A DNA stretch of 64,000 nucleotides from Oikopleura dioica (taxonomy: Eukaryota > Animalia > Chordata): the NCBI GenBank assembly GCA_907165135.1, contig OU015569.1, forward strand, positions 8,990,001-9,054,000, written 5' to 3'. The position numbers were made by a program, and so were the translations under genes. The notes under the pieces are model-generated. The model was not told the DNA's origin. It was given only the letters and a program-made list of their open reading frames with translations, and did not search any database. Below, in pieces: positions 12,345 to 17,166 of this stretch. Numbering within the stretch: position 1 is the stretch's first letter; every line of letters begins with the position of its first letter.

Positions 12345-14681
12345 ATGTCGTTTGGATATAATTTCAAGAAAATTACAGTCGTCCAGCCGGCCAAAGAATT
12401 TATCGACTCTACTCTCTCCAAGACGCAACGAAAGACTCCAACGGTCATTCACAAGGAACGCGCTTCTCATTAGCTTTGGATTGGTTGTACAATTTTCTGT
12501 TTTGTTACTTGTAATTTTTATCGTTCAAAGGTTGCAAATATGAACGCTCCTAAAGCATCTCCCGATCTCTCGAATCAGAGGGTTCTACCTTCGCAAGGTC
12601 AAGTATACCCAGCAAAACTTTCATGATCGGCTCGAGATGATGCTGACTGAATTCCCTCGATTGGAAGACATTCATCCCTTCTACTCTGATCTGATGGGTG
12701 TTCTCTACGATCGCGATCACTACAAGCTTGCACTTGGTCAAATCTCTACCGCAAAGCATCTCATCGGTAAAGAATAACTTTTAATGCCGAGTGTAAATAT
12801 TCTTAAGATGCCGTGGCGAGAGATTACGGAAGACTTTTGAAATTCGGAGACTCATTATATCGCTGCAAACTATTGAAGACAGCTGCACTTGGTAGAATGT
12901 GCACGATTATAAAACGACAGAAAGCGAACCTTGAATACCTCGAAGAAGTAAGGAAGCCTTTTTGTCGTGGGTTCTGAGCTTATTTTAAGGTTCGACAACA
13001 TCTTTCTCGTCTGCCATCTATTGATCCTACCGCCCGAACGCTTCTTTTGGCTGGTTTCCCGAACGTTGGAAAGTCTTCTTTGATTAACTTGTTGACGCGA
13101 GCTGACGTTGAGGTGCAGCCCTATGCATTTACCACCAAGTCTCTACGTCGGACACATGGACTATAAGTACCTTAAATGGCAGGTCATCGATACTCCGGGT
13201 ATTCTTGATCACGAGCTCGAGGAGCGAAACACCATCGAATGGCAGTCCGTTACGGCGCTTGCTCATCTCAAAGCTGCTATCGTCTACATTGTTGATATCT
13301 CTGGTAAGAACTAGCTTTATTAAGTATTGTTAATTGTGTTTATAGAACAATGCGGAACCCCGATTGAAACTCAGATTGCTCTCTTCAAGAAAATCAAGCC
13401 CTTGTTTGCCAACAAGCCAGTTTGTGTGATGCTCAACAAAATTGACATCACTCCCTTCGACAAGCTGACTCCGGAGAACCAGGAAATGATTAATGATTTC
13501 CTCAAGACTGAGGGTGTCAAATTTTACAAAACATCTAATGTCTCCAAAGAAGGCATCATGGACATGCGAAATGCTGCATGCGATGAGCTGTTGGTCCAGG
13601 TAGACGATCAATTTTCAAGAGCCACCTAATCTTATAATTTTAAGCGGGTGGAAGCCAAGCTTAGAGGACGACAAGCAGACAACATCTTGAACAGGGTCTA
13701 TGTTGCTCAGCCAAAGAAACGAGACGATGTTGAAAGACCAGCAGTGATACCTGGCAATGCTCCTCAACTGCGAGAAGAAGCTGATGCACGACCGAAGATA
13801 AGAACTGAGCGTGACATTGAGCTCGAACTTGATGTAAAAATTTTAAACAAATTCTTCTTTCTTACATCGGTTTAGGACGAGTACATGTTAGATCTCCGCA
13901 AGACTTGGGATTTGAAGAACGCCGAGGAGGCTGCAGATGCTATCCCTGAAATTTGGGAAGGAAAGAATATCGCTGACTTCGTCGATAAGGATATTATGGA
14001 AAAGCTGGCTGCATTGGAGGCAGAAGAGGAAGAGCGTGAGAAGAGTGGTTTCTACAACATTGACGTTGAGATGGATAGTGATGACGAGGAAATCCGAGAG
14101 CTCGCGAAGGTTATAAGAAGAAAACGAAAGATCCGAAAGCTTGAAGAGAAAGTGGACCGAGCTCCGATCGGACGAGCTGCTCTGCCTAGAAAGAATGATG
14201 TAATATTTTGTGTCGGTATATGATATTTTACATATTTTATTAGAAACAACTGGAGGCCAACATGAAGGACCTTGGCCTTGGTGAACACATAGAGCGTGGA
14301 AGAGGAAATTATAAGGAGTCCATCCACCGTGGTCGATCAATGGCCCGTAAGCGAATGAAGAACAATGACGGCGATGCTATGGACGTTGATGGTGATTCAG
14401 GCTCCTTGGCAAGGAGCAAGTCTCGAAACCGATCGCAGAGTCATGTTCGAGGACCAGCAAGAAACCAGAGTGGCGTTAGACCCGCTGAGGTTTATTGAAT
14501 TATTGACGACTCTTCGTTAAAGCTTCTTTAGGTGGCAAAGGCAGAGAAGCTTCGAAAGAAGGCCCAGAAGACCATCAACCAAGATTCACGAAGAGGTGAA
14601 GCTGATAGAAGGTTCTTGGACAAGAAACCGAAACACTTGTTCTCTGGAAAGCGAGGAAATGGCACTAACGATCGACGATAA
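12345..14681 (+). CDS. GTPBP4: Nucleolar GTP-binding protein 1 (NOG1)
   Basis: [13 protein letters not shown]...[13 protein letters not shown]1 [34 protein letters not shown]; ends [21 protein letters not shown]. Confidence 0.96.
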
Positions 14682-15068
14682 GCGTGGTTTTATGATGGAA
14701 ACTGTTATGATAGAGCGGCTAATAAATTTCTTGTCAGAGAAAAATGTAGTTATATTTCTGAGCTTGCACTTTTGAAGTAATGGTCAGACTCAAAGTGATT
14801 AACTGTCGTACTTTATATCAACTCTGAAGAGTCTGCAACTACATAGTTAGCTTTCATGATCAGATTCTGATCTGCAACATGATCAATGGCTTCTTATGTA
14901 TGCCTGCAAATATAAAAAGGATTTTATCAAGATCGCAGATTCTAGTGATTTGAATATATTATCCGCAAGTGGCAGTAAGTGAGTGCAGTAAGATATGAGT
15001 GAATTTCTTGCCAGCAATTTGGAATGTGAAAGTAAACATGTCACGCGGTGAATGTGAGGTGCCTCCAG

Positions 15069-16216
15069 TTAGGCTTGAATGTGTGATCGACTAATAGTCT
15101 TCGACATGGAGGGAGCACCGGAGCGGCCGGGAAGGTTAGCTACTTTTTGTGTTTCATATTTTTCATTAAAAATTTTCGACGGACACAACTAAGGTCAAAT
15201 GGAACATTCCTGGAGCAGATAAAAGCATGGATTGACGACTTGGGACGTAGTTTTCATCCTCTTCCTTCAATTCCGCATCGCTTCCGACTAAGAAAGATTT
15301 GATTACAGTTAAGTCGACGCCGGTACCTATCGCGATGTAGGTCTCCACGAAGGGTTCATCTACCGCCGCCGCCCATTTTTCTCGTTCAGCGGATGTCACA
15401 GTCTAAAACAGGGTTTAACATTAAAGACTGTTGTGTGTACCTTGAAGTCGATCGTATTTTTCTTGAGTCGTTTGTTGTTGATCTTGGCAAGATTCTTGCC
15501 GTTTGTCTTCAACTCGTGGTAATTTTTGGTCATCTCAGTTTCCCAATTTCGAAAAATTTCCTCGTCTCCTTGGATGCCGTAAGTGACGTTTTGCATCTCC
15601 TCGGCTTCGAAGTTGTTTTCCCACACTTTTTGCCCCTTGTCAAGACATTCCCAAAGTTCTTCCGCTTCCCACTCAATCAATCCCTCGGCCTGAGCCGCGC
15701 AGATCTTCATGAACTGCCCTACAGTCACTTCTTCGTCCTTCATCTTCATTACTTCCCAATTATTCCCCGCAGGAGACCATCGTCGGCTTAATCAATTTAT
15801 AAAATCAAATCAAAAATAAATCAATTTGGATCGCTCCCCTGTAACGAGCTCACCTCAAAAGGTAGTGTCCCTTTTTGCGCTTCGTCGCCTCTTCCCAGGG
15901 ATCGTCGTGTTCCTCCCACTCAAGCTCTCTCAGAGTGATAAAGTCGAAGGCGATCGCCTTTCCGACTTTGGAGGGATGGAAGAAAAATCCCGCCGCCGCG
16001 AGTTTCTCGGGTTGGCAATTCGCATCTTCAGGAAATGGCCACTCTGAGTTCCTAGAGGTTAATTCTGAGAGTGCACGCGGGTTTGAAGTCTTACTTGAAG
16101 GAGGCTAGCCTCGATTCGTACCCGACCATATCCCTCGCATATCTCTTGAAGTCTTCAATTCTGCGACTGTACTCGAGAAAGATCTCATTGACTTTTTCTA
16201 GCCTGTTTGGGATCAT
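15069..16216 (-). CDS. Divergent survivin (BIRC5)-like single-BIR protein with C-terminal extension, ~309 aa
   Basis: Exons 16216-16095, 16051-15854, 15786-15441, 15402-15210 and probably 15139-15069 join in frame. They give YESRLASFKNSEWPFPEDANCQPEKLAAAGFFFHP...RELEWEEHDDPWEE...EEVTVGQFMKI, matching survivin [47 protein letters not shown]. If the last GA-AG intron is not used the stop is at 15166. Confidence 0.78.
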
Positions 16217-16239
16217 TTTCACCTGAATCTTCAAAAATA

Positions 16240-16375
16240 ATTTGTTTGAACTTCAAGTTTTGAACTTCAAGATCCTTTCCTGTTCATTTTTCTCTAAAAT
16301 TAGCGAATATTCCGCGCGCACGAGAAAGACAAATTCGCGCCTGCGATGTGATAGCAGTCAGCAGCCAATCAGAGT
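16240..16375 (-). promoter_or_regulatory. Probable cell-cycle-type promoter of the survivin-like gene
   Basis: CCAAT box (CAGCCAATCAGAG 16362-16374), E2F/CDE-like TTCCGCGCGC and TTCGCGC, tandem CHR-like TTTGAA motifs (~16245-16265), and a ttcag acceptor just before the ATG. Confidence 0.45.
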
Positions 16376-17166
16376 CGAGCCCTCGAACTCTGAATTTGTA
16401 AGCGTGTTGTTCGAACTTCGAGCAGACTCGTTGAAAGTTTTCGTGTCAGTTCCATTGTTCTTGATTGAATTCTTTGATCCCCTCCTATAAGAATTTCATC
16501 AAGTAATCGGCTGGGCCAATTTCAATAAGGAGTTGAGATTCGAAATCGTAGCACCCCCCTTTCTTGTGCTCATTAGAAAGAGCGCAAAAGTTACGCCAGA
16601 AAAAGTACTTTTAGAGGATGAGTCCCCGAAAATGACGTCACGATGACTCACTGAAGTTCCAAAAGTCCAAAACTTTGCCACGCTCTCATTTTTTTTCTAG
16701 AAATGGAAAATTTGAGTTCGATACAGGAAAATGATCGTCTTGAGCCACTCTACCTGAAGAGCTACATATAAAAGATCCACCTCTAGAAGAAAAATTTTTC
16801 TAGTTTTAGTTCTAGAGTTTTCTTGAGTTGGATCTTTCATATGTAGCTCTTCAGGGAGAGTGGCTCAAGACGATCATTTTTCTGTATCGAACTCAAATTT
16901 TCCATTTCTAGAAAAAATGAGAGCGTGGCAAAGTTTTGGATTTTGGAACTTCAGTGAGTCATCGTGACGTCATTTTCGGGGACTCATCCTCTAAAAGTAC
17001 TTTTTCTGGCGTAACTTTTGCGCTCTTTCTAATGAGCACAAGAAAGGGGGTGCTACGATTTCGAATCTCAACTCCTTATTGAAATTGGCCCTGCCGTTCC
17101 TACTGAAGGAGTGCTTGTTGATTTCACCATCGAATGAAGATCATCTTCTTAATTCTACGTTGAAAG
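16341..17166 (+). repeat. 826-bp direct repeat, copy 1 (copy 2 at 20894-21710)
   Basis: CTGCGATGTG...ACGTTGAAAG recurs at 20894-21710; the differences seen are homopolymer-length changes. Confidence 0.97.
16508..17096. mobile_element. Foldback/MITE-like element with ~270-bp inverted arms (copy 1)
   Basis: CGGCTGGGCCAATTTCAATAAGGAG... is the near-perfect reverse complement of ...CTCCTTATTGAAATTGGCCCTGCCG, with a ~50-bp spacer around 16780-16828; no TSD recognised. Confidence 0.85.

Follow-up and report, generated by a model that had tools for sequence, protein, structure and literature searches.

A conserved appendicularian survivin with substitutions at all four canonical zinc-ligand positions of its BIR domain

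The minus strand of the Oikopleura dioica DNA analysed here (the window: 64,000 nucleotides, positions 8990001 to 9054000 of contig C2 in assembly G000, which comprises 64.3 Mb in 19 contigs) encodes a true survivin-type BIR homologue in which all four canonical zinc-ligand positions are substituted. The sequences point to something that appears to be new, a conserved and expressed survivin whose BIR has no canonical zinc site, and the departure seems more extreme still in a second paralogue. The window gene may be described as one of two putative survivin (BIRC5-type) genes in this appendicularian tunicate, whose genome, with its very short introns and many copies of a 40-nt spliced leader, resembles the Okinawa type of O. 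dioica. It is probably that of a working survivin, with a BIR that folds without zinc and still reads H3T3ph in the chromosomal passenger complex.

The homology is evident from exon 2 alone. This 65 aa segment (window positions 15856-16050, minus strand) scores 30.1 bits against the Pfam BIR model PF00653, above the cut-off of 22.9 (E 7e-7), and its orthologues score 27-48 bits. The best solved relatives of exon 2 are 15 survivin sequences (E 1e-8 to 1.6e-7), and other IAP BIRs (ML-IAP, cIAP, NAIP) trail these matches, from 1.8e-4. The survivin-like BIR that had been proposed from the DNA letters is therefore upheld both by a Pfam score above the cut-off and by survivin as the best solved relative. 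Human survivin C57, C60, H77 and C84 correspond in exon 2 to D (codon 15945-15943), T (15936-15934), A (15888-15886) and H (15867-15865). These assignments are common to the HMMER and MAFFT alignments and are those of the original prediction. Exon 2 contains one Cys and three His, and because the Cys is single, no shift of the alignment restores a CCHC set. The C-x2-C-x16-H-x6-C zinc signature, quoted as the defining feature of BIR domains (PMC13159474), is absent from exon 2. It had also been suggested that searches could miss this gene; this is so for a strict CCHC pattern, but the Pfam BIR model finds it.

Alignment with orthologous contigs, together with frame arithmetic, predicts six exons between 16216 and 15069, with 891 nt of coding sequence, or 297 codons; the orthologues P0010, P0008 and P0173 have 290-305 aa. 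Exon 1 (16095-16216), with its start codon at 16216-16214, codes for an N-terminal helix and for Y-E-S-R-L-A-S-F, with which the BIR begins. Its phase 2 end lies at the donor GTAAGA; the exon is conserved at the orthologous loci L018, L019, L026 and L023, and is read through continuously in the P0008 and P0010 mRNAs. Intron 1 (16052-16094; 43 nt, GT..AG, acceptor CTCTAG) is placed from sequence; it diverges strongly between lineages while its flanking exons are conserved. Exon 2 (15854-16051) encodes the BIR core and holds the four zinc-position codons. It is followed by intron 2 (15787-15853; 67 nt, GT..AG), which is RNA-supported. Exon 3 (15441-15786), conserved in all orthologous loci, encodes a linker, R-R-W-S-P, and then the long survivin-type C-terminal helix, which starts D-E-E-V-T-V-G-Q-F-M-K-I.

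The downstream part of the model is predicted from frame and conservation. Intron 3 (15403-15440; 38 nt, GT..AG) leads to exon 4 (15327-15402), whose block W-A-A-A-V-D-E-P-F-V-E-T is conserved in orthologous loci and recurs in the mRNA orthologue P0008 as an L-D-E-P-F motif. The predicted intron 4 (15288-15326; 39 nt, GT..AG) coincides with a stretch that has stop codons in other lineages. Exon 5 (15210-15287) encodes an acidic stretch and an S-R-Q-S motif, present as S-R-Q-S-I in P0010 also. The predicted intron 5 (15143-15209; 67 nt) has the non-canonical ends GA..AG, and is the only splice that keeps the frame into the conserved last exon, in the window and in L018/L028 alike. Reading exon 5 through intron 5 gives a short unrelated tail as the end of the protein. 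Exon 6 (15069-15142; stop codon 15071-15069) encodes a basic, Ser-rich tail, G-A-P-S-M-S-K-T-I-S-R-S. It is conserved at the DNA level across lineages, and the tail resembles the A-P-P-S...K-S-K-S of P0008 and P0010. Exons were searched singly and not joined; questions about the whole protein were answered with the natural full-length mRNA orthologues.

The original prediction had presented a spliced BIR peptide, and this is an exact match to the window translation; the absence of the gene as a unit from the open reading frame track merely reflects splicing. The RNA junction evidence is for the joint between exons 2 and 3. An oligo-dT metatranscriptome contig (run X1, record 3) spans the joint 15786|15854 with 0 mismatches, and RNA contig coverage of exon 2 extends over positions 15854-16032, also with 0 mismatches. 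A second RNA contig covers positions 15517-15720 of exon 3. As both the joint and the ligand codons are present in RNA contigs, the zinc-less exon is transcribed and spliced. No AG near 15760 would preserve the frame, and a GG-AG intron or a stop directly following exon 2 were considered; both are rejected, as the RNA contig places the acceptor at 15787.

Raw RNA reads from three runs labelled as the same species give zero coverage of the survivin gene at 88% likeness, and the same reads cover neighbouring genes at 88-95% likeness. Over window positions 12400-14810 these reads show fixed differences, mostly at third codon positions, and replaced introns, as at 12759|12806, where 5 other letters are found. 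The reads over this region derive from another cryptic lineage, and for this reason the raw reads are uninformative on expression of the survivin gene.

Upstream of the gene, a promoter-proximal block (16300-16380, minus strand) is conserved between lineages in an alignment with L018, L019 and L026, and contains the sequence GATTGG (16370-16365), an inverted CCAAT box. The interval from this block to the start codon holds two TTCAAA motifs. TTCAAA/TTCGAA motifs close to the start are reminiscent of CHR elements in G2/M genes, and we take the region to be a putative cell-cycle promoter. Within the region 16216-16380 the window lineage has an inserted promoter stretch with a tandem pair of C-T-T-G-A-A-G-T-T-C-A-A-A units. 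Just upstream of the promoter, window positions 16499-17082 form a large inverted repeat; it is seen as mirror-image open reading frames with the same peptides on both strands (16499-16681 minus, 16936-17082 plus).

When the exon 3 frame was used in a word search, seven short open reading frame calls on environmental contigs were recovered, and these contigs carry the whole gene. L023 and L024 belong to the window's own lineage. The other contigs represent at least four further O. dioica-like lineages (L017; L018/L025/L028; L019-L022; L026/L027). Wherever a contig extends to the ligand codons, these specify D, T or N, A, and H. Across the five lineage groups the exon structure is conserved and the open reading frame intact, with introns scrambled. 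In L018/L028, L019-L022 and L026/L027 there is an extra intron of 35-45 nt inside exon 3, after the C-L-C-K-G codons (L018:1140-1171, L019:1250-1293; the site corresponds to window position 15636). The extra intron is absent from the window lineage, L023 and L017.

The survivin gene is under strong purifying selection. By the Nei-Gojobori method, dN/dS is 0.05-0.23 for the BIR exon and 0.04-0.25 for exon 3, the helix exon. Comparisons among the other lineages give the BIR exon a dS of 0.25-0.47; against the window, dS is saturated. A dN/dS near 1 had been named beforehand as the sign of decay, and the values of 0.05-0.23 are therefore not those of a decaying gene. That the locus is a decaying pseudogene, or that the model is mis-spliced and real transcripts restore Cys/His residues, is very improbable. 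The single point in favour of such an explanation, with no other support found, was that the exon 2 donor at first seemed to have no in-frame acceptor. The RNA contig has since fixed the acceptor at 15787 and includes the four ligand positions; the 297-codon frame is unbroken, dN/dS lies far below 1, and the same substitutions are found in uninterrupted mRNAs of more distant relatives, described below.

Searching 1.84 billion representatives with a BIR-exon profile gave 251 hits. Best among those with a single BIR are P0008 (298 aa) and P0010 (290 aa), which derive from 1-kb transcript contigs with uninterrupted frames; P0172, P0173 and P0174 were added by further search. The P0008 transcript (L036) has a 3' poly(A) run, and its 5' end is a 40-nt leader that has at least 40 copies at 100% identity in assembly G000. 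P0172 and P0174 also carry the 40-nt leader, even translated. The shared leader thus identifies P0008, P0172 and P0174 as appendicularian mRNAs. In the assembly the copies of this spliced-leader 40-mer (at least 40) often occur as head-to-head pairs. When searched against G000, P0008 and P0010 match at this survivin locus only.

In these distant orthologues the ligand positions read D-T-Q-H, C-T-Q-H, C-S-Q-H or D-I-Q-H. Taken together with the O. dioica lineages, ten sequences show H at position 84 (10/10), always D or C at position 57, and Q at position 77 in six of the ten, with A at position 77 throughout the O. dioica lineages. At position 60, two species have I and the others T, N or S. 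The original prediction had allowed that transcripts might restore the Cys/His ligands, and they do not: the uninterrupted mRNA orthologues carry substitutions too. Among 228 BIR domains in the best hits from the 1.84 billion representatives, 196 have the full C-x2-C...H...C pattern, the rest being fragments, splice variants or domains whose spacing is longer. Within this set the CxxC pair is kept by every domain outside the appendicularian clade and is absent only from that clade. The named top hits outside the clade are all BIRC5 proteins of arthropods, flatworms and vertebrates. Judged from these alignments, the loss of the canonical zinc site is common to all appendicularian relatives found. 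Outside the clade, the survivin-like P0125 of Seison nebaliae (KAI3382274.1) keeps three Cys ligands and has Q at the position of His77, the same H-to-Q change as in the appendicularian clade. The literature searched, which included the text of PMC6681789, describes no zinc-less BIR and no Oikopleura BIR proteins beyond those mentioned in that text.

Maximum-likelihood trees built on the BIR region unite the ten zinc-less sequences in a single clade (100/99). The clade lies inside the survivin-type BIRs and is set apart from IAP-type BIRs, including those of G000 itself, at 99/98, or at 95/96 once the four ligand columns are taken out. The columns in which the clade and 25 canonical survivins share no residue are 56, 60, 77, 81 and 84. 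At column 56 the clade has an aromatic residue, where canonical survivins have K, R or Q, and at column 81 it has K or R. The two trees disagree on whether the lineages that keep C57 are the sister of all others, and so yield no common order of ligand loss. Descended from ordinary survivin BIRs, the domain has lost its C-x2-C...H...C zinc site in the appendicularian lineage, with changes of 60 to T/N/S/I, 77 to Q/A, 84 to H and, in most lineages, 57 to D.

Searches of G000 with a canonical BIRC5-like query, the Pfam BIR model, exons and orthologues found no canonical CCHC survivin in the assembly. The canonical query, from hagfish, has its best match at the window locus (E 1.7e-13) and its next best at a BIR-BIR-RING IAP (6e-7). 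Several other loci were considered as a canonical survivin and rejected. The locus at C5:4.535 Mb has a BIR-BIR-RING architecture, that at C4:12.908 Mb combines multiple BIRs with a RING, and two more, at C2:12.55 Mb and C2:0.50 Mb, are IAP-type. At C5:11114173-11114892 (L013:1072-1791, minus strand) a 240-aa frame has two BIRs and, by sequence, no solved relative, and it was rejected also. Its two weak BIR-like domains keep C-x2-C, H and C, with 31.8 bits to Pfam BIR over two stretches, and its architecture is unlike that of the other IAP loci of the assembly.

Searches with exon 2, exon 3, P0008, P0010, P0012 and Pfam BIR had suggested that survivin is single-copy in this genome, a reading overturned by a divergent second survivin-like paralogue. 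This lies about 2.5 Mb upstream, at approximately C2:6480707-6481700 (L049:2208-3200, plus strand), and was missed by the Pfam BIR scan. At the zinc positions it has H, L and I, the fourth being L or C depending on the alignment, such that it also lacks at least three of the four ligands. It has W-P-F and A-K-A-G-W motifs, Cys residues in the neighbourhoods C-C-R-H and T-T-C-K-W, and a helix after the BIR remnant, and shows 34% identity over 47 residues. In the tree it is the sister of the zinc-less clade, weakly supported (59/53), on a branch of length 3.0. It is thus like the window gene in ligand loss and in the helix, but far more divergent. According to the text of PMC6681789, two Survivin paralogues of O. 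dioica are expressed in mitotic stages (Feng et al.), the genes not being matched to loci there. The L049 gene and the window gene fit these 'two Survivin paralogs'.

Structure models agree with the homology. A BIR is a three-stranded sheet flanked by helices and normally holds one structural zinc ion. The AF2 model of exon 2, from a 50-row alignment, has a pLDDT of 91.4; the alignment consists mostly of zinc-binding survivins, and the model therefore speaks for compatibility with the fold and not for stability in a metal-free state. In a Foldseek search with this model the top 24 matches are survivin (TMq 0.73-0.81), and other IAP BIRs follow at 0.60-0.69. A BIR match by profile or structure, the lack of which would have told against the original prediction, is hence obtained on both counts, with the Pfam score of 30.1 bits and the survivin matches of Foldseek. 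The model of the full-length orthologue P0008 (pTM 0.71) consists of an N-terminal helix, the BIR, a pair of long helices and a tail that is disordered; it can be aligned with the full length of human survivin, including the helix (TMt 0.72-0.76). In survivin this C-terminal helix forms a three-helix bundle with Borealin and INCENP. The helix motif E-E-V-T-V-G-Q-F resembles E-E-L-T-L-G-E-F of human survivin.

Of known proteins, human survivin/BIRC5, a class A survivin (PDB 1E31, 3UEF, 6YIF), gives the best sequence and model match. Both have one BIR at the N-terminus and a long helix after it, and the human pocket positions K62, E65, D71 and E76 are kept in the window gene, with R at position 62. 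What sets the window gene apart from human survivin is D, T, A and H in place of the ligands, the missing G66 and R in place of H80. It also has about 40 extra N-terminal and about 110 extra C-terminal residues, the latter made up of another long helix and a basic tail. The class B survivins of non-mammalian vertebrates share the Arg at the human H80 position (R89 in Xenopus survivin-B); they keep the CCHC zinc site, which the window gene is without. R is present at position 80 in 4 of the 25 canonical survivins aligned.

The pocket that binds the H3 N-terminus had been predicted to be retained apart from H80, changed to R. This is borne out by the exon 2 alignment, in which E63-L64-E65, W67, D71-D72-P73 and E75-E76 are kept, K62 is R and H80 is R, with the added finding that G66 is missing. 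Across the clade, position 62 is K or R, D71 is kept except for E in one relative, E76 is invariant and position 80 is always R. Outside the O. dioica lineages E65 gives way to S, G or D; three relatives have F instead of W67, and most lack G66. The roles of the pocket residues are taken from work on vertebrate proteins, where E65 is needed by human survivin for H3 binding, and where class B survivins and the human H80R mutant bind H3T3ph in a phospho-specific manner (PMC3327328). H3T3ph binding by an R-form class B survivin shows little pH dependence (PMC3327328). In O. dioica, H3pT3 marks inner centromeres, as stated in the text of PMC6681789, and a Haspin kinase gene is present in G000 at C1:10524115-10524508. 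Searches of the same assembly with the Borealin Pfam models PF10444 and PF10512 gave nothing significant, which is weak evidence given a short, fast-evolving helix. It is proposed that the window protein would read H3T3ph, the Haspin mark, through K/R62, E65, D71 and E76 together with Arg 80, in a class B-like manner.

One may ask whether this BIR still reads H3T3ph at all. The gene could be a functional survivin descendant with some other role, for example as a helix scaffold or as a binder of Shugoshin-like N-terminal peptides, with the centromere read by the other paralogue or another protein. The variation of E65 and W67 in the clade, the deletion of G66, and the extra helix and tail, which point to added functions, are in keeping with this, as is the presence of two paralogues in the genome, by which the centromere-reading role could rest with either gene. 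Such a change of role is nevertheless quite unlikely: all ten sequences retain D71 (E once), E76, K/R62 and R80, the rate of evolution of exon 2 is as low as that of the helix exon, and the pocket of the other paralogue is far more divergent than that of the window gene.

A second question concerns the metal. The original prediction left a choice between a zinc-independent and a re-liganded fold. The BIR might still hold a metal in a rebuilt site, formed by D/C57 and H84 with water, Gln/Asn or a residue of a partner protein. This is in line with H84, invariant in the ten clade members, with position 57, always D or C and hence a good zinc ligand in either form, and with Q77, present in six of ten, which can occasionally coordinate metal. 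It is unlikely all the same, as a site with no more than two protein ligands would be structurally weak, positions 60 and 77 vary in ways that do not favour metal binding (I in two species and T/N/S elsewhere; A in all O. dioica lineages), and the only other Cys or His conserved in the clade is the equivalent of human C33, which is present in all survivins and is a non-ligand. From the residues present, with only 57 (D or C) and 84 (H) still able to bind metal across the clade, a four-ligand site is excluded and a rebuilt site seems unlikely. 'Zinc-independent' would appear to fit the clade BIR better than 're-liganded', given the occurrence of I at position 60 and of A at position 77.

Chicken survivin with single ligand mutations (the equivalents of C57A and C84A) neither localises nor rescues (PMC2568024). 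Since loss of a single ligand abolishes function in chicken, compensation must be assumed in the zinc-independent BIR favoured here. Perhaps the metal cross-link has been replaced by side-chain contacts, for which an Asp/Cys57-His84 pair, the aromatic residue at 56 and basic residues at 81-82 are candidates. The U-box offers a parallel: relative to the RING finger, its zinc sites have been replaced by side-chain interactions, with fold and function kept. By analogy a similar conversion may have taken place in the survivin BIR, although the U-box is of another fold and family, and its metal-free fold is shown by structures where that of the survivin BIR is only inferred. Another comparison is with plant BORI, which joins a Survivin-type helix to an FHA domain and shows that the helix core is conserved while the phospho-histone reader can be changed (PMC9680938). 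Plants swapped the reader domain entirely, whereas appendicularians keep the BIR and lose only the metal site.

A broader picture can be offered only tentatively. Appendicularians may segregate their chromosomes with zinc-free survivin BIRs, which would be the first natural metal-free BIR fold and a conversion like that of the U-box. The change may have had a single origin at the base of the group, before or around the duplication that gave two zinc-less paralogues. The H3T3ph pocket would then have outlived the metal, and the added helix and tail may do part of Borealin's job.

A CCHC zinc site is what defines the BIR domain, and here a whole chordate class has a constrained survivin without those ligands. 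Pattern-based surveys of BIR and IAP proteins would drop these genes, and inventories of the appendicularian kinetochore and chromosomal passenger complex could misjudge them. The clade also provides natural compensated sequences with which the role of zinc in the BIR fold, and independence from the metal, can be probed. For the organism itself, the finding bears on how the Haspin mark is read by the fast-evolving division machinery of Oikopleura, which has no detectable CCAN and two INCENPs.
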